From positions 124,001 to 188,000 of the IMG/VR virus record IMGVR_UViG_3300050821_013430: a stretch of 64,000 nt of DNA. The stretch is one strand, 5' to 3'. Below are positions 50,936-60,505 of the stretch, piece after piece; position 1 is the first letter of the stretch; every line of letters starts with the position of its first letter. The notes under the pieces are model-generated. The model was given only the letters and a program-made list of their open reading frames with translations. It was not told the origin of the DNA and ran no database searches. The translations under genes and the position numbers were made by a program.

Positions 50936-51249
50936 TTTGTTCTAAGTTTTCCTAAAAGCGATCCGAAATCTTTGAGATCAATTTTGAGTTTAGGAAGCGC
51001 GGCGAGTTTATCGTTGATGTATTGTTCATAAGCAAAAGAATCACTATTACTCCTACGTTTGGCTAATTCTTCCATTGCTAACTTAGCAAGTTCAGCATAC
51101 ATTCCTAAATATCTTTGGGCGACAACAAGATCAGCTAATTTAGTATTAGGTAGTTCTGGTATGCGTTGAATAATTTCTTCTTCGGAAAGAGATTCTCCTT
51201 CGATCTCGTCGGGAAGAAATTCTGAAATATCATAAAGTCCTTTGATCAT
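50932..51249 (-). CDS. Hypothetical protein
   Basis: 105-aa ORF. Confidence 0.55.
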   Translation of the reverse strand: MIKGLYDISEFLPDEIEGESLSEEEIIQRIPELPNTKLADLVVAQRYLGMYAELAKLAMEELAKRRSNSDSFAYEQYINDKLAALPKLKIDLKDFGSLLGKLRTK

Positions 51250-51596
51250 CTTAGTCCCTCGACAGTTTTCATTTTTATTTTGACTCCCGTAGTTATCTCG
51301 CCTTTTCGATGATAAAACTCACTAAGTAAAGGACGTCTATAAAAGAATAGAATCATTTTCTGAAATAGTTTAGGAAAATATAACATCTTCCCCAAAATCA
51401 ATAATTCTCGTATTGTCTGAAAGGTATATTTGATTATTAGTGCTACGTCGCTTTTAGGAATCAATGGGTACCGGGCAGACACTCGGTCAACCAATTTATC
51501 AGTTTTCATTTTGATAGGATATTCTTGATCTAAAACACGCACTAATTCTTCTGCTGAAATATCTACAAAATCAAATTGTTGATGATATTTTTTCAT
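51246..51596 (-). CDS. Divergent HU/IHF-like protein
   Basis: LVDRVSARYPLIPKSDVALII...IRELLILGK resembles HU/IHF N-terminal helices. Confidence 0.5.
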   Translation of the reverse strand: MKKYHQQFDFVDISAEELVRVLDQEYPIKMKTDKLVDRVSARYPLIPKSDVALIIKYTFQTIRELLILGKMLYFPKLFQKMILFFYRRPLLSEFYHRKGEITTGVKIKMKTVEGLR

Positions 51597-51599
51597 TAT

Positions 51600-51950
51600 C
51601 TAATCAATTATATCAGTACTTTCCTTGATTTCCAATTCAACATTCTTTTTGATCATTCGTTGATAAAAATCACAATCCAATTTCTCTTCATCGGTCGCGC
51701 ATTCTAAATGCCAACCCCTACCATTTTGGCAAAAAATAAAATCTCCCGGCAAATAAACACGATTACATTTTTCACATTTACCACTAAATTTTGATGGAAG
51801 GTAAATGATTTTACCATCATTCCGAGGAGTACATTTTAGTTTGCCATCTCGGATCATTTTGGCGATCTCGACCGCCGCGCCCGGGCTACCGTTCTCGTTG
51901 AAACAGTCCAAATAATAATTGAAAGCGTTTTGAATTTTGTTGTTGATCAT
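51600..51950 (-). CDS. Hypothetical protein with Zn-binding motif
   Basis: SKFSGKCEKC...PGD.I...WHLEC. Confidence 0.55.
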   Translation of the reverse strand: MINNKIQNAFNYYLDCFNENGSPGAAVEIAKMIRDGKLKCTPRNDGKIIYLPSKFSGKCEKCNRVYLPGDFIFCQNGRGWHLECATDEEKLDCDFYQRMIKKNVELEIKESTDIID

Positions 51951-54108: not shown

Positions 54109-54485
54109 ACGACAAAAATACAACACTCAAACTTTTAGCCATTGTCAAAAAACAACAAGCGATGATTGAAAGACTAGCCAATTGGTCAGGGGCGGTTAGT
54201 CCTGCCTCGGTATTACAAGCAAATACTCCTAATAGTGCTGGCAGTATGGCTGGGGCACCAGAAAGCGCTAAACAGCGCATCCAAGCCATGATTATTCCAA
54301 TGAAGTTGGAAATTATTGATTTGGAATGGGGCACACTTCCAAAAATAGTACTGCAAGGCCAAAAAGTAGATTATCCAAGACCGCATGCTGATCAAGATTT
54401 GGTTGCTCGCTTGAAACCACGCCTTTCTACAATAATGGATGACTATCAAAAACACGGTATTGTGCTTAGCATTCAACTTGTTTAG
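54105..54485 (+). CDS. Hypothetical protein with N-terminal module shared with 52964
   Basis: MNDKNTTLKLLAIVKKQQAMIERLAN; AGGAG SD. Confidence 0.6.
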   Translation: MNDKNTTLKLLAIVKKQQAMIERLANWSGAVSPASVLQANTPNSAGSMAGAPESAKQRIQAMIIPMKLEIIDLEWGTLPKIVLQGQKVDYPRPHADQDLVARLKPRLSTIMDDYQKHGIVLSIQLV

Positions 54486-54510
54486 CTTCAAATTCGAACG
54501 GCATTTAATA

Positions 54511-55197
54511 ATGAAAGATGTTTGTACAATCTATATTATACAAAATAATTTCAATGATAAAGTTTATATTGGCCAAACTTGGCAACCCGTCAATAAGCGT
54601 TTCAATGCACATCTAAAAGATAAAAAAGGCTCCTGTCGTAAGTTATTCAATGCTTTCAATAAATACGATCGCGCGAATTTTTATATCGCGGTATTAGCGG
54701 TTTGCAATACACAATCAGAAGCAGATTGGCTGGAAACCTGCTGGATAGATATTTTCGATAGTCGTATAAATGGATACAATCTTAGAAGTGGCGGATCACG
54801 CGGCAAACATTCAGAAGAAAGCAAACAAAAGATGAGCACCGATCGAAAAGGCAAAATGCTTGGAGAAATACATCCAATGTATGGCAAGCATCATACCGAG
54901 GAAACTAAAGCCAGAATGTCAAAGTCCAAAAGAGGAAAGGTTCAATCCGAAAAAAGCAATCATAAAAGATCAGAAGCATTGAAGGGACGATCGATTCTTA
55001 CGGAAATTCAAGTTCAGCAAATCCGGGAAAGCCACATGCAAATGAAAAGTTATCGTACATTAGCTAAAGAATTTGATATATCTATAACTACAGTGGAACG
55101 CGTGGTAAAAAAGAAAAGTCCATATAATAAACCGCTTACTGATGAAGCAAGCATAGCAAGACAAAATAATAGCCAGTCTAAACTTTTTGGTACTTAG
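54511..55197 (+). CDS. GIY-YIG homing endonuclease with NUMOD3 repeats and HTH
   Basis: IYIIQNNFNDKVYIGQT, GYNL, HSEESK/HTEETK; start at MKDVCT. Paralogue of 14030-14866. Confidence 0.88.
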   Translation: MKDVCTIYIIQNNFNDKVYIGQTWQPVNKRFNAHLKDKKGSCRKLFNAFNKYDRANFYIAVLAVCNTQSEADWLETCWIDIFDSRINGYNLRSGGSRGKHSEESKQKMSTDRKGKMLGEIHPMYGKHHTEETKARMSKSKRGKVQSEKSNHKRSEALKGRSILTEIQVQQIRESHMQMKSYRTLAKEFDISITTVERVVKKKSPYNKPLTDEASIARQNNSQSKLFGT

Positions 55198-55720: not shown

Positions 55721-56185
55721 TCAAGAATGTGGCAAGATCAATTTTTCAACATCAATTCCAAAACTTTTCAACAAGGATACATCTAATGCCCAATGAAAGT
55801 GGCTGCGTTGGCTCCAAATCTGAAACTCGTGGTGAATATAATCCTTGGCCTCTTGTTCCGGTATCTCATTGACTTTCATTAGATGGTGTAGGGCGTCCTC
55901 ATATTTCCCGGCGGTCATCGCATAACCCATATGTTTAGTGAGATGGCAGGCGGGACATAAGGCCATCATGCATTTTAGTTTTTGGATATGTCGATGATCA
56001 TCATATGACCAAACTTCGTGGCAATGCAAGGCAACATTGGTAGTGCCGCAAACTTCGCAAGCGTTGTAGGCGTTGCTATAAATTTGCTTTCTAAGTATGT
56101 CCCATTGAGTTTGAGAAAGGATAGCACGAAGACTCTTGCCCCACGCATTTAAAGGGACGAGTTCAAGTATTAGGCGCATCGACAT
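55721..56185 (-). CDS. HNH endonuclease-like protein
   Basis: WDILRK...CEVC...LHCHEVW...LCPACH..KH; AGGAGG SD. Confidence 0.75.
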   Translation of the reverse strand: MSMRLILELVPLNAWGKSLRAILSQTQWDILRKQIYSNAYNACEVCGTTNVALHCHEVWSYDDHRHIQKLKCMMALCPACHLTKHMGYAMTAGKYEDALHHLMKVNEIPEQEAKDYIHHEFQIWSQRSHFHWALDVSLLKSFGIDVEKLILPHS

Positions 56186-56255: not shown

Positions 56256-56332
56256 TGGTGTCCCCGGCGAATTAACAGCTCGCATCATTTTCGTTTTAGG
56301 GACGAACGCTCTTGTTTTTGAGCTACGGGGAC
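56256..56332 (-). tRNA. Atypical tRNA with CUA anticodon (putative amber suppressor)
   Basis: GTCCCCG TA GCTC-AAAAACAA-GAGC G TTCGT-CCCTAAA-ACGAA AATGAT GCGAG-CTGTTAA-TTCGC CGGGGAC A CCA. Full cloverleaf with encoded CCA; anticodon CTA at 56297-56299; C33, no D-loop GG, no TTC. Confidence 0.75.
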
Positions 56333-56337
56333 AAAAT

Positions 56338-56394
56338 TGGTAGGGACGGTAGGACTTTCACCTACGTTAGGGCCTGTTGCGCCCAGTCATCCCC
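56338..56394 (-). ncRNA. 57-nt mini tRNA-like RNA (acceptor stem + one hairpin + T-arm + ACCA)
   Basis: GGGGATG ACT GGGC-GCAACAG-GCCC TAAC GTAGG-TGAAAGT-CCTAC CGTCCCT A CCA. Confidence 0.55.
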
Positions 56395-56399
56395 ATAAG

Positions 56400-56732
56400 T
56401 CATTTGATCCATTCATCTGGCACAATCGCGTGGGATTGACACCATTCATCGAGGTCTTGGTTTTCCATCCACATAAATACACCATAATCTTCACCACCAA
56501 AATACTCATCGATATGAATATCGATATCCTCTAATTTTGCTCCTTTGAGAAACTCAACAACGATATGGGCAGCCCAAATAGCATAGGCTTTGCGCCCATC
56601 TGTAAGTTTTTGGTAGAGGTTTTTAGCGACAGTATGTACATCGCCTAATAAATCTTCTGGATCGACAAACCATCCTTTGGATGTATAGAGATACTTGCCA
56701 GTTTTCCAATTATTGATTACATATTGGGCCAT
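56400..56732 (-). CDS. Hypothetical protein
   Basis: 110-aa ORF directly after the PTH2-like gene. Confidence 0.55.
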   Translation of the reverse strand: MAQYVINNWKTGKYLYTSKGWFVDPEDLLGDVHTVAKNLYQKLTDGRKAYAIWAAHIVVEFLKGAKLEDIDIHIDEYFGGEDYGVFMWMENQDLDEWCQSHAIVPDEWIK

Positions 56733-57068
56733 TTATTTTCCTTTCAATGCCAGTTTCAGATGTTGGCATAATCTTTTGCTTTTCTCACCGGGCGCCAATG
56801 CTATCGCAGTGAGTTCGTCTTCCAAATCCGGCTCTCGAAATAATGTTCGTTCGATGTTTTGTTCTCTGGCTTGTCGAGCAAGCTCCTGCAAGTCAAATTT
56901 ACTTTCAGTTCGCAACACCACAATATAGTTTGAGGTCGTTAGCCAATGCTTTGCACTCTCAGGATGTTCGATCATAAAAGTGGTAGCGGCGTGGCAGGCC
57001 TGAGCGATTTGTAGTCCTGGTGCGAGATCGCCCCGCACCACGATGTAGAGTTTATCAATCTATGACAT
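56733..57068 (-). CDS. PTH2-family (peptidyl-tRNA hydrolase II-like) protein with in-frame UAG at codon 3
   Basis: ATG TCA TAG ATT GAT AAA CTC TAC ATC GTG GTG CGG = MS*IDKLYIVVRGDL; then AQACHA, IVVL, FREPDL..ELTAIAL. The ATG overlaps the upstream TAA (TAATG). Confidence 0.8.
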
Positions 57069-57484
57069 TAGAGGCCCAGCACTTTCAATATCTTGCCAAA
57101 AACGGTATGGGCGATTTGGTTGGTGGCTGGCATGGCAGCAGGTTTAGCAGCGGGCAGTGATTCGTCTTGCAGCCAAGCCTTCACTCTTTCCAAAGTCCAG
57201 ACGCCGGGGACGTTATGGGCCTCGATGATTTGCAATATAAGCCCCGCTGAGGGCTTATTGTCGATCCGACATCTAGGCTCCAAGACCTTGTAGAAAACGC
57301 CTCTAAGGGCTGCGTAAGCGAGCAAATGATGTCTTGATTGACTTCCGACGGAACGCTTGATAGAGCAAAGCGACCAAGCCTTCTCATCCTTTTTGGCTTT
57401 TTTGATTTGGGATCGGAGTTGTTGAGACTTGTCCGAGAGTCCGTTGATTTTTGCTACTAAAAAATGTCTATAATATTTATTCAT
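57068..57484 (-). CDS. Hypothetical protein (RHHLLAYAALRG motif), first gated gene of the amber operon
   Basis: 138 aa; AAGGAG SD 7 nt upstream. Confidence 0.7.
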   Translation of the reverse strand: MNKYYRHFLVAKINGLSDKSQQLRSQIKKAKKDEKAWSLCSIKRSVGSQSRHHLLAYAALRGVFYKVLEPRCRIDNKPSAGLILQIIEAHNVPGVWTLERVKAWLQDESLPAAKPAAMPATNQIAHTVFGKILKVLGL

Positions 57485-57569
57485 TAAGTTTCTCCTTGTA
57501 AAATTGTTTGGTGAATTGGATTGAAAGAAGCCAATCCCAAGGAGGATCGCGCGAACGAATAGTAATCTA
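57477..57569 (-). promoter_or_regulatory. Putative amber-readthrough translational attenuator (UAG + RDPPW + anti-SD/SD stem)
   Basis: After the TAG the frame stays open as ITIRSRDPPWDWLLSIQFTKQFYKEKLNE-TAA. CTCCTTG (57544-57538) is complementary to the SD CAAGGAG (57498-57492). Inner hairpin GGATTG/CAATCC. Confidence 0.65.
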
Positions 57570-57764
57570 CGAATAGGTCATTAGTTCGGTTTCTGAAATT
57601 TCGGTCAAAAATTCTTCATTAGTGGTTTTGATTTTATAGGTAGGCACACCATTGATGAATACATTATCAAAACCTATAATAGTGGCAGCCACTTCGTAAT
57701 CACCAACCCAGGGATTGTATCTTTGGATTTTTACTCTTTGTCCAATTGAGAATTTAGCCTTCAT
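57567..57764 (-). CDS. Small KOW/SH3-like protein that also serves as the leader ORF ending MTYS-UAG
   Basis: KFSIGQRVKI...YKIK...ISETEL; GGATATA motif 9 nt upstream. Confidence 0.6.
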   Translation of the reverse strand: MKAKFSIGQRVKIQRYNPWVGDYEVAATIIGFDNVFINGVPTYKIKTTNEEFLTEISETELMTYS

Positions 57765-57781
57765 CTCTAACTATATATCCT

Positions 57782-58135
57782 TTATTTAGCAGCCAATTGT
57801 CGAAATACTTCGGTGGCCCACTCGTTCAATGCAGCCAAAATGAAATCCCAATCCGCTTCCGTCAAATCCTCATTGTTTTGCATTTTAGTATCTAACTGCA
57901 AAAGATAGAGCAGTTGATCGGTGAGATGATTGCTCTTCTCGTGCATATACTGCTCAAATAGGAAGAAAATTACCTTGCCGCTATCTTCCGAGCCGGGGTG
58001 GTAATTGATCGAGAAAAGTTCTTTGACCCAAGCCATATCCTCTTCGGAAGGTTTGACGCCCTCGTCGCGTAGGAAGCAGATGATGACGCTTAGCCGGGTG
58101 TAGCAGGAATGTAGATGTATGTTTTCAGGTGCCAT
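57782..58135 (-). CDS. Hypothetical protein
   Basis: Start at MAPENI (58135); the longer call overlaps the tmRNA 3' end. Confidence 0.55.
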   Translation of the reverse strand: MAPENIHLHSCYTRLSVIICFLRDEGVKPSEEDMAWVKELFSINYHPGSEDSGKVIFFLFEQYMHEKSNHLTDQLLYLLQLDTKMQNNEDLTEADWDFILAALNEWATEVFRQLAAK

Positions 58136-58154
58136 TGTCTTTCTCTGTAAATTT

Positions 58155-58506
58155 TGGAGCTGCCGAGCTTCGATGCCCGGGTCTCCCACACTCAATCCTA
58201 AAACTCATTCACAAACTTAGCAAGTGATATTAGCATTTGCACTAATCGAAGAGTTTTAGGTTCTTCGCGACCGATCTACTGTTGATTTCATTTGAGGCCC
58301 CGTAGCCAAACATCAAACTATTTTTCGTGGGTTAGCGTTCCTTTGACTACTAAAAATACCTCATCTCGGAACGTATGGGGCCCTTAGGCTGCCATAGCGA
58401 ATACTGTTTCGTCAGCGTTCAAACGTTGATCACTTTTTGACGAGGAGCAATCGTCCCCGGTTTGCGTTTTAGTTTCTCCTGCGAGATCGAAATCCAATTC
58501 AGCCCC
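58155..58506 (-). ncRNA. ssrA: tmRNA, tag (A)ADETVFAMAA
   Basis: 5' GGGGCTGAATTGGATTTCGA and 3' CAGCTCC-A give an acceptor stem with G3:U70. Tag frame GCT GAC GAA ACA GTA TTC GCT ATG GCA GCC TAA at 58416-58384. Length 352 nt; CCA not encoded. Confidence 0.92.
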
Positions 58507-59740: not shown

Positions 59741-60505
59741 TCAGTGTTTTTTGATGATATCTTGGAGAAATTCCTTTTCCGAAGTGAAAATCGGAACATC
59801 GGTATTTAGAGCCCAACGCTCTTTTACAATATCCTCGCCGTTGTAATTGATCGTCTCCGGGCGTCGGTAGCACACTACGCCTCTCCTAAATTCGACCGGA
59901 TACTCATAGAAATCAATTCCCGCTTCTTCTTTCAATAGTTTGATCTTCTCTTCCAAGGAAGTATCCATCAGCATCTCTTCGATTTCGTGTTTCCTATACT
60001 TCTTGATCAATTCATAGAAACAAGCCAGCCTAACTGCAATTTGGTGGGCTCGTTGCTGATGATATACCATAACATTTACTGCCTCAGTAAGATTAGGGAC
60101 GGTAAAAATCTTGCTCAAAAAGATGGGGTCGCCCGACAAATTTACTTCCAATTCTGCTGCAGCATCATTGAAATGGAGCGTGGCAAGAGAAGAAGCGGCA
60201 GAAATAATTTTGGAAACGGAATTATCATACCAAGGCTGAGTATCCAAAGTTTGATCGTTTCTTACAATTATTGTAATTTCATCGTTGAACGAATAAGCAA
60301 AAACTGCTCCCTCAATTTCTTGAACGAGATCGGCCATCGTGGCATAGAGGCATTGTCCAAGTTCCAAAGAAAATGGTTTTGGTAGCAAGGAAGTGATCTT
60401 GCTGAAATTTCTTCCGTTGAGATTGATGATCAGCGGCACTCGGGGCATCAGTCTCGGGTCGCAAATATCCTCATAACTTGTAATTCTGGCTTTCAGTGGC
60501 TGCAT
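59741..60505 (-). CDS. Thg1-like protein (tRNA-His guanylyltransferase / 3'-5' polymerase family)
   Basis: YE...P.II.LNGRNFS.T...KPF, YSFNDEI, SKIISAASS, FRRGV. Confidence 0.85.
   Translation of the reverse strand: MQPLKARITSYEDICDPRLMPRVPLIINLNGRNFSKITSLLPKPFSLELGQCLYATMADLVQEIEGAVFAYSFNDEITIIVRNDQTLDTQPWYDNSVSKIISAASSLATLHFNDAAAELEVNLSGDPIFLSKIFTVPNLTEAVNVMVYHQQRAHQIAVRLACFYELIKKYRKHEIEEMLMDTSLEEKIKLLKEEAGIDFYEYPVEFRRGVVCYRRPETINYNGEDIVKERWALNTDVPIFTSEKEFLQDIIKKH

Follow-up and report, generated by a model that had tools for sequence, protein, structure and literature searches.

What might prevent the Shine-Dalgarno (SD) sequence of a small gene of unknown function in a huge phage from being used, and what might release it? 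The locus in question lies on the minus strand of a 64,000-nt (64-kb) stretch of IMG/VR record IMGVR_UViG_3300050821_013430, hereafter the window. A preliminary description of this sequence had proposed that codons located just behind an amber stop double as an anti-SD, and that a ribosome reading through the amber codon would pause on an R-D-P-P-W motif, melt the stem and couple translation to the next gene, thereby acting as a stop-codon-readthrough sensor. We found every coordinate given for this arrangement to be exact, and the features of the leader and of the gene it precedes are as follows:

57772..57780, minus strand: conserved GGATATATA box, 7 nt upstream of the ATG of the leader ORF, promoter-like
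57570..57764, minus strand: leader ORF, here expanded to 65 codons, whose last four codons, M-T-Y-S (57581-57570), correspond to the 3-8-codon mini-ORF of relatives
57567..57569, minus strand: invariant amber codon (UAG)
57552..57566, minus strand: five in-frame spacer codons (I-T-I-R-S) between UAG and the candidate arrest motif
57540..57551, minus strand: R-D-P-P (CGC GAT CCT CCT), a RAPP-class arrest motif
57538..57544, minus strand: anti-SD CTCCTTG, made of the Pro-Pro codons plus the first two bases of the next codon, and the exact complement of the SD
57517..57537, minus strand: inner hairpin in the spacer (GGATTG, 57537-57532, an 8-nt loop and CAATCC, 57522-57517; or alternatively GGATTGG / CCAATTC)
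57492..57498, minus strand: SD CAAGGAG of the 138-aa gene, predicted to be sequestered
57068..57484, minus strand: putatively regulated gene (ATG at 57484), encoding a 138-aa protein of unknown function
57477..57479, minus strand: TAA that ends the read-through frame, 5 nt into the 138-aa gene

To decipher whether the SD is likely to be masked, the segment was folded with RNAfold, which places the anti-SD:SD helix and the inner hairpin in both the MFE and the centroid structures, with ensemble probabilities of 0.97-1.0 for the seven anti-SD:SD pairs, although the whole 131-nt segment is not unusually stable (z = -0.88). Taken alone, however, the pattern in the window is near chance. One TAG-(0-8 codons)-R[AGDS]PP occurs in the 64 kb against 0.34 expected, and two of 29 SD-bearing genes have a perfect 7-nt upstream complement of their SD. 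R[AGDS]PP is absent from the 84 proteins of the window, but only 0.4 occurrences were expected. The observation becomes far more than chance only through its conservation in related leaders.

The 138-aa protein belongs to a phage-only family of at least 290 members, many of them on contigs of 0.2-0.5 Mb. AlphaFold2 predicts a helical hairpin plus a small domain (pLDDT 86), yet we found no fold match in the PDB and no Pfam, PHROG, NCBIfam or PDB sequence match, and the ESM Atlas gave only sub-threshold leads. DNA and protein searches of the GenBank phage collection, as well as a metagenome scan using window-specific peptides, found nothing, and a scan of GTDB genomes found no relatives, so no host could be named. 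Nevertheless, we recovered 36 distinct upstream regions of this family (individual leaders and their loci are denoted below by L numbers), 31 of them retrieved through the protein and the others being L020, L039, L064/68, L065 and L066. In 36 of 36, from genomes of 39% to 63% GC, an ATG-initiated mini-ORF ends in TAG, never TAA or TGA, followed by 1-6 in-frame codons, the motif R-[A/G/D/S]-P-P about 58-72 nt before the main ATG, and the SD about 45 nt further on. The spacer between TAG and Arg is always a whole number of codons (three codons in 28 of 36 leaders) and never contains a stop. A scan for the leader motif itself found it only in front of this gene family.

The codon pattern of these leaders shows selection at both the peptide and the RNA level. 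The motif is RAPP in 16 leaders, RGPP in 15, RDPP in 3 and RSPP in 2; Arg is encoded by CGT, CGC, CGG, CGA, AGA and AGG, while Ala and Gly each use all four of their codons. In contrast, the Pro codons that supply the anti-SD are almost fixed, with CCT used for the first Pro in 29 of 31 leaders and for the second in 26 of 31, against 30% CCT use in the adjacent genes (binomial 1e-13 and 6e-10, not corrected for relatedness). The four x residues observed are exactly those reported as strong (RAPP, RGPP) or partly permissive (RDPP, RSPP) for ribosome arrest, and arrest of this class is reported to be refractory to EF-P (PMC12992588). The stall is therefore best read as a RAPP/RGPP-class arrest, with the RDPP of the window as one of the weaker variants, and not as an ordinary EF-P-dependent polyproline pause of the kind suggested by the DPP and PPW contexts invoked in the preliminary description. 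The Trp that follows PP in the window is not conserved.

In the MFE of 30 of 31 leaders the PP codons pair with the SD zone, and cognate arm pairs are more stable than non-cognate ones (-15.2 against -11.4 kcal/mol, and -6.7 against -3.9 for the flanks alone, with 0 of 5000 permutations doing as well in either test). The helix is also register-specific, with 81.5% of cells paired against at most 54% when slid. On the other hand, base-by-base covariation in the anti-SD:SD helix is not significant (55 of 500 shuffles), because its core never varies, and RNAalifold on a MAFFT alignment predicted no consensus structure, because the spacer aligns poorly. The closest relative with DNA, L005, has a degraded SD (CAATGAG) and no predicted anti-SD:SD pairing. 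The exact inner hairpin is not conserved outside the clade of the window and L005, where a G-to-A change in L005 better fits the alternative register. The stall geometry is taken from PMC10951233. When ribosome footprints were modelled, the median probability of the SD being unpaired was 0.004 for free RNA, 0.003 with a ribosome at UAG and 0.38 with a ribosome arrested on RxP/P (0.00, 0.00 and 0.23 in the window), so that modelled accessibility rises only when a ribosome sits on RxP/P.

Coupling of the read-through frame to the next gene, as envisaged in the preliminary description, is not universal. Ending at the start of the next gene is seen in only about half of the leaders: the arrangement of the window occurs also in L046, seven other leaders end in an ATGA overlap with the main start, three are in frame with the main gene, and twelve of 31 have a stop directly after PP. 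At the other end of the leader, the GGATATATA box occurs only once in the window and is thus not a general promoter motif there, but the same box lies 5-7 nt before the mini-ORF ATG in most relatives, and where it lies further away an SD-like element usually intervenes. We infer that it could be a promoter, which would make the leader ORF (near-)leaderless. The 65-codon ORF itself is 89% identical in nucleotide sequence to that of L005, against 65% for the adjacent gene, with 11 synonymous and 8 non-synonymous codon differences; it has no Pfam or PHROG match, and no homologues were found beyond its own cluster.

What, then, might cause UAG to be read as sense? The preliminary description did not see the likely input, which lies within the surrounding cluster of translation-related genes:

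58152..58506, minus strand: phage tmRNA gene upstream of the leader (Rfam RF00023, 71 bits, E = 1.7e-26)
56733..57041, minus strand: PTH2-type peptidyl-tRNA hydrolase, the next gene in the cluster (Pfam PF01981, E = 1.8e-10, 41.5 bits against a cut-off of 23)
56400..56732, minus strand: 110-aa ORF of unknown function abutting PTH2, with no family match
56256..56332, minus strand: atypical tRNA-like gene with anticodon CUA (anticodon loop CCCUAAA, C33)

The PTH2 gene is syntenic in relatives, in which tmRNA and a tRNA-Thr array lie upstream of the leader. A tRNA(CUA) gene lies on the same strand 0.4-3.3 kb downstream in 15 of 20 loci with at least 2 kb of downstream sequence, and atypical tRNA(CUA) genes add the window, L005, L058 and L026, giving 19 of 20; the divergent members L064, L065, L066 and L068 have one too. 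The tRNA-like gene of the window folds as a cloverleaf with a 7-bp acceptor stem and an encoded ACCA end, the L005 copy keeps the fold through four compensatory pair changes, and nhmmer finds relatives in many related loci, all with a CUA anticodon. However, it has C33, lacks GG in the D loop and the T-Psi-C motif in the T loop, and is missed by both ARAGORN and Rfam, so its suppressor activity is uncertain. No canonical tRNA was found within the 64-kb window, which is the only part of the 472-kb genome that could be examined.

Together these findings support, with the corrections given above, the proposal of a readthrough sensor, and we consider the following explanation likely, although it rests on sequence anatomy, conservation, codon-level signatures and predicted folds, with no experimental evidence for readthrough, arrest or regulation. 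In the OFF state, ribosomes would translate the leader ORF and be released at UAG, leaving the Pro-Pro codons (CCU CCU) and flanking bases paired with the SD of the 138-aa gene, which is then not translated. In the ON state UAG would be read as sense, most plausibly by the tRNA(CUA) encoded a little further down the same gene cluster, in competition with RF1. The arrested ribosome would cover the anti-SD arm and free the SD, such that other ribosomes start on the 138-aa gene, probably followed by PTH2, and output would report whether amber suppression is working in the infected cell. One reservation is that in ApdA and ApdP RAPP alone is not sufficient for stable arrest, 10-15 upstream residues also contributing (PMC7897499), whereas here the nascent chain would be only about 11-17 residues in most relatives.

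Of the alternatives, the one that deserves most consideration, though we think it unlikely, is that the same leader senses RF1 activity, with near-cognate tRNAs reading UAG when RF1 is scarce or inhibited by the phage or by a host response. The leader can only measure the competition between termination and decoding at UAG and cannot tell a surplus of tRNA(CUA) from a shortage of RF1; moreover, the window and L022 lack a canonical tRNA(CUA) in the sequence available, and the probably co-regulated PTH2 and the nearby tmRNA fit a response to termination failure. Yet the linkage of tRNA(CUA) genes to the leader is hard to explain if the tRNA were irrelevant, and the base after TAG is a purine in 30 of 31 leaders, a context that probably favours suppressor tRNAs. 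It is more doubtful still that UAG is simply a sense codon in a phage with a reassigned code, the leader being an always-translated RAPP arrest uORF that responds to some other signal. Suppressor tRNAs are typical of TAG-recoded phages (bioRxiv 10.1101/2021.08.26.457843) and several tRNA(CUA) genes occur per locus, but within the 64 kb seen TAG ends 13 of 84 well-delimited genes, including a 1179-aa gene, coding density is 93.5% under the standard code, and no TAG-split genes stand out in about 337 kb of related loci, where few candidate TAG-joined ORF pairs appear. A mere sense codon would not remain TAG in 36 of 36 leaders; we read the invariant TAG as a deliberate gate. Backup stops after TAG-ending genes are not clearly enriched (median extension of 6 codons, against 8.5 and 9 for the other stops).

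Nearly as doubtful is an RNA-only or ordinary uORF device in which RxPP is never translated and the SD is opened by ribosomes translating up to the UAG or by some other factor. CCUCC is inherently complementary to GGAG, and both the lack of significant covariation and the near-chance pattern in the window would be compatible with this view, but it does not account for RxPP being in frame with TAG in 36 of 36 leaders despite whole-codon indels, for Arg switching between the CGN and AGR codon families, or for the restriction of x to four residues, and a modelled ribosome at UAG does not open the SD. Initiation just after the TAG was also rejected, because the following codons are ATT, GTT, GTC, AAC or CTT with no SD. 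Transcription attenuation appears very improbable: a weak terminator-like site lies at 57549-57532 on the minus strand (7 pairs, 3 of them G-C, with the tail GCTTCTTTCA), but this hairpin relies on G-U pairs and is not conserved in relatives, whereas the helix with the SD is.

The closest known systems are the RAPP/RGPP-type arrest peptides ApdA, ApdP and ApcA, and SecM with RAGP (PMC7897499, PMC10951233, PMC12992588), with which the phage leaders share the core motif and permitted x residues, a small ORF just upstream of and co-directional with the regulated gene, and a stalled ribosome expected to open a helix that hides the downstream SD. Here, however, the motif lies behind an in-frame UAG and outside any annotated ORF, in phages rather than cells, so that the signal would be stop-codon decoding rather than secretion or insertion force; there is no signal peptide or TM segment, and the downstream genes encode a protein of unknown function and PTH2 rather than Sec/YidC components. 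In translational attenuation leaders such as ermCL-ermC a ribosome stalled on a short leader ORF similarly remodels a hairpin to expose the next SD, but those stalls need an antibiotic bound in the exit tunnel, whereas here the stall would be intrinsic and access to the stall site would be regulated by a stop codon. The prfB (RF2) gene appears likewise to use an in-frame stop as a gauge of termination efficiency, but that stop, UGA, would lie inside the regulated gene and be bypassed by a +1 frameshift aided by an internal SD, apparently without an arrest peptide or SD sequestration, while in our leaders RxPP is in the zero frame after TAG and the regulated gene is a separate cistron with its own SD and ATG. 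In the mammalian AMD1 C-terminal tail (PMC13025110) ribosomes that read through a stop codon are also stalled by a downstream peptide, although at a second stop 384 nt downstream, and this limits translation of its own mRNA rather than switching on a downstream cistron. Finally, stop-codon-recoded phages (bioRxiv 10.1101/2021.08.26.457843; PMC9523058) also encode tRNA(CUA) genes and manipulate the meaning of UAG, but carry many in-frame TAG codons in late genes, whereas the window uses TAG as an ordinary stop.

Arrest-peptide leaders are known to sense secretion, membrane insertion, antibiotics and metabolites, but in the literature we found there is no description of one gated by a stop codon in bacteria or phages, nor of a sensor of suppression. 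If the leader works as inferred, it would reveal a class of RAPP-type arrest sequences that ORF-based surveys cannot see, because the motif lies outside annotated ORFs, and would offer a compact natural part (about 100 nt) that reports amber-suppression efficiency, useful for genetic-code-expansion work. It is only somewhat more likely than not that huge phages carry a conserved suppressor module, composed of an amber-gated RxPP arrest leader, the 138-aa protein, often an HD-domain protein, PTH2, and one to three tRNA(CUA) genes, in which the leader is a natural sensor of genetic-code state that permits translation of the module's proteins only once UAG is actually being read as sense in the current host. 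The 138-aa family would then be an undescribed factor acting on amber suppression or on its consequences, and is pointed to as a candidate player in suppression or ribosome rescue if the inferred mechanism holds. In that event the leader would show how a standard-code phage that carries amber-suppressor tRNAs monitors and manages suppression, which bears on how phages tolerate and time stop-codon reassignment.

On the minus strand, a 65-codon ORF (57764-57570) ends in TAG at 57569-57567, and the same frame continues as ITIRS-RDPP-WDW... until it reaches TAA at 57479-57477. The sequence CTCCTTG (57544-57538), made of the two Pro codons plus TG, is the exact complement of CAAGGAG (57498-57492), which sits 7 nt before the ATG (57484) of a 138-aa ORF, while GGATTG and CAATCC form the inner hairpin. 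RNAfold placed both the anti-SD:SD helix and the inner hairpin in the MFE and in the centroid, and in the ensemble of the 120-nt leader the seven pairs have probabilities of 0.97-1.0, although the segment as a whole is not unusually stable (z = -0.88). On the window alone, however, the arrangement in the preliminary description is not beyond chance: one TAG-(0-8 codons)-R[AGDS]PP occurs, against 0.34 expected per 64 kb, and two of 29 SD-bearing genes have a perfect 7-nt upstream complement of their SD.

The window is part of a 472,749-bp IMG/VR viral contig, and has 38.8% GC and 93.5% coding density under the standard code. Its 84 genes end in TAA (46), TGA (25) and TAG (13), with the TAG-ending genes including one of 1179 aa, and TAG is thus an ordinary stop here. 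Neither the window nor about 337 kb of related loci show TAG-split genes that stand out. Two adjacent 116-aa ORFs at 51246-51950 (-) do lie in the same frame separated only by TAG-ATT, such that amber suppression would fuse them into one protein of about 234 aa, but they are not detectably homologous to each other and have no Pfam match. The neighbourhood of the leader is rich in translation-related genes, arranged as follows:

59741-60505 (-), a Thg1-family tRNA-His guanylyltransferase-like gene (Pfam E = 1.8e-18)
58506-58152 (-), a phage tmRNA gene (Rfam RF00023, 71 bits)
57764-57570 (-), the leader ORF, followed by the 138-aa gene (ATG at 57484)
57041-56733, a PTH2 peptidyl-tRNA hydrolase gene
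a 110-aa ORF
56394-56338 (-), a 57-nt tRNA-like minihelix directly after the 110-aa ORF
56332-56256 (-), a tRNA-like cloverleaf with a CUA anticodon

The Thg1-like gene lies upstream of the tRNA-Thr/tmRNA/leader region in relatives as well. The tmRNA was detected by Rfam but missed by ARAGORN, and because the 5' part of the listed ORF 57782-58195 (TTG start) overlaps it, that ORF probably starts further downstream; relatives encode tmRNAs with tags such as ANDNAFAPLALAA. Just beyond the tRNA-like genes are a GIY-YIG/NUMOD3 homing-endonuclease gene (54439-55197, +; Pfam) and a Cys/His-rich 154-aa ORF (55721-56185, -) that appears HNH-like by eye but has no Pfam hit. A GIY-YIG gene occupies a similar place in the related locus L022. 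Mobile endonucleases may have reshuffled the tRNA end of the module.

The 138-aa protein belongs to a family of at least 290 proteins, many on contigs of 0.2-0.5 Mb, which is absent from GTDB genomes and from the GenBank phage set. We recovered upstream DNA for family members (loci designated here by L numbers) from viral contigs, by exact-protein look-ups, and by one metagenome scan with a DNA pattern for the protein motif RHHLLAYAF, none of which used the leader itself. These retrievals gave 31 distinct upstream regions, plus those of L020 and the 63%-GC member L039. In every one, the three-frame translation of the 260 nt upstream contains exactly one RxPP, whose nearest in-frame upstream stop is always TAG, 1-6 codons before the Arg. 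The TAG always closes an ATG-initiated mini-ORF of 3-8 codons, or of 60-65 codons in the window, L005 and L061. A later scan of viral contigs with the leader motif itself found only the same gene family downstream, adding three divergent members (L064/68, L065 and L066) and one chance hit. In total this makes 36 distinct leaders, with RAPP in 16, RGPP in 15, RDPP in 3 and RSPP in 2. In many of them (e.g. L007 2893-2905, L024 and L028) the sequence around the amber codon is ATCTATAGAT, a perfect 10-bp palindrome centred on TA/TA, but it is not present in the window or in L008 and is therefore not required for the design.

Two layers of selection are apparent on the same codons. At the peptide level, Arg is encoded by CGT, CGC, CGG, CGA, AGA and AGG, Ala and Gly each use all four of their codons, the TAG-to-Arg distance changes only by whole codons, and the x position is limited to A, G, D and S. 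These four residues are exactly those reported as strongly arresting (RAPP, RGPP) or partly permissive (RDPP, RSPP), and such arrests are reported to be refractory to EF-P (PMC12992588). At the RNA level, the first Pro codon is CCT in 29 of 31 leaders and the second in 26 of 31, whereas CCT makes up 30% of Pro codons in the adjacent genes (binomial 1e-13 and 6e-10, not corrected for shared ancestry). This is what would be predicted if, as the preliminary description proposed, the codons double as the anti-SD.

With regard to the helix, the PP codons pair with the SD zone in the MFE of 30 of 31 leaders. Cognate 5' and 3' arms form more stable duplexes than arms taken from different leaders, at -15.2 against -11.4 kcal/mol overall and -6.7 against -3.9 kcal/mol when the CCUCC/GGAG core is removed, and 0 of 5000 permutations did as well in either test. 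On the alignment, the proposed register gives 81.5% paired cells, against at most 54% when slid. However, the four core pairs never vary, and the two flanking pairs do not reach significance for covariation (55 of 500 shuffles). The helix therefore rests on conserved, register-specific complementarity, on codon bias and on arm-matching energy, and not on classic compensatory changes. We also modelled ribosome footprints by holding nt -12 to +15 around the P-site codon single-stranded. Median P(SD unpaired) was 0.004 for free RNA, 0.003 with a ribosome terminating at UAG, and 0.38 with a ribosome arrested with the first Pro codon in the P site, the corresponding values for the window being 0.00, 0.00 and 0.23. 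The usual three-codon spacer places a terminating ribosome just short of the helix.

Some features are particular to the window or temper the general picture. The window and L005 possess a 65-codon leader ORF instead of a mini-ORF, ending in M-T-Y-S-TAG, which resembles the M-x-Y-L-TAG of relatives. This ORF is much more conserved between the two phages (window 57567-57764, -, compared with L005 4716-4913; 89% nt identity) than the neighbouring 138-aa gene (65%), suggesting either recent exchange of this segment or an extra constraint on it. The motif in the window is RDPP, a weaker variant, and L005 has a degraded SD and no predicted anti-SD:SD pairing. Moreover, RAPP alone was not sufficient for stable arrest in ApdA and ApdP, where upstream residues matter (PMC7897499); the conserved [Y/H/F]-[L/F/W]-UAG-[I/V]-[R/K/Q] context may supply that upstream contribution, although this is an inference. 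After PP, 12 of 31 leaders have an immediate stop, seven end in an ATGA overlap with the main start, the window and L046 stop 5 nt into the main gene, and three are in frame with it. Coupling of readthrough to translation of the next gene, which the preliminary description had inferred, is therefore an option and not the rule. A weak terminator-like hairpin over the PP codons is not conserved.

The likely input is suggested by what lies downstream. ARAGORN found a tRNA with anticodon CUA on the same strand, 0.85-3.3 kb after the start of the regulated gene, in 15 of 20 loci with at least 2 kb of downstream sequence, often in two copies, and the divergent members also have one. The window has no canonical tRNA. 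At the syntenic place (56332-56256), however, it has a cloverleaf with a 7-bp acceptor stem, an encoded ACCA end, and the anticodon loop CCCUAAA, which gives a CUA anticodon with C33, but with no GG in the D loop and no T-Psi-C motif. The L005 copy keeps this fold through four compensatory pair changes. Using nhmmer we found this atypical tRNA(CUA) type in many relatives (L007, L008, L011, L026, L040, L045, L052, L054 and L058), often alongside a canonical tRNA(CUA), and including L026 and L058, which lacked a canonical one, bringing linkage to 19 of 20 loci. The D loop of these genes is AAAGGAA or AAAAGNAA, and a 9-nt T loop of the type GUGUCAGGA replaces T-Psi-C; ARAGORN misses several of them, and whether they act as suppressors or as decoys, and with which amino acid, is unclear. 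The neighbouring 57-nt minihelix (56338-56394, -) has a 7-bp acceptor stem with two G-U pairs, two stem-loops, no D arm and an encoded ACCA end (-23.1 kcal/mol, z = -2.3), and is absent from L005. Gene order is typically leader, 138-aa gene, a 183-188-aa HD-like protein, PTH2 and then tRNA(CUA). The gene for the HD-like protein (L024:2916-3476 and 15 homologues) follows the 138-aa gene in most relatives but is absent from the window. It carries an invariant HD-C-G-K-P motif, gives a weak HDIG hit (E = 0.0055), and has as its best fold match a tRNA-processing enzyme complex (3wfq; E = 0.016, TM 0.57), followed by HD phosphohydrolases, and it may be a tRNA-end repair or processing enzyme.

The building blocks of this leader, namely RAPP-class arrest and SD sequestration relieved by a stalled ribosome, are established. 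To the best of our knowledge, and within the papers we could search, placement of the arrest motif behind a stop codon, in a phage, next to amber-suppressor tRNA genes, has not been described. The nearest analogies are prfB, where an in-frame stop gauges RF2, and mammalian AMD1, where readthrough is followed by a stall (PMC13025110). The leader would work like one of the ApdA/SecM type, but differs in that its motif is not inside an ORF and that it has no monitoring-substrate design.

The mechanism we consider most likely, which is inferred from the sequence comparison and predicted folds and in which we have reasonably good confidence, is that release at UAG leaves the SD paired, whereas decoding of UAG lets the ribosome reach RxPP, where it arrests and covers the anti-SD arm. 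The SD is then free, and the 138-aa gene is translated, probably followed by PTH2. The decoding could be by the module's own tRNA(CUA) competing with RF1. The 138-aa protein itself might promote, limit or merely accompany suppression; its predicted model is confident (pLDDT 86, a long helical hairpin plus a small domain), but nothing in the PDB or the family libraries matches it. The module would make its proteins only when suppression actually works in the cell, and one possible rationale is that PTH2, and the tmRNA nearby, deal with the by-products of reading through stop codons.
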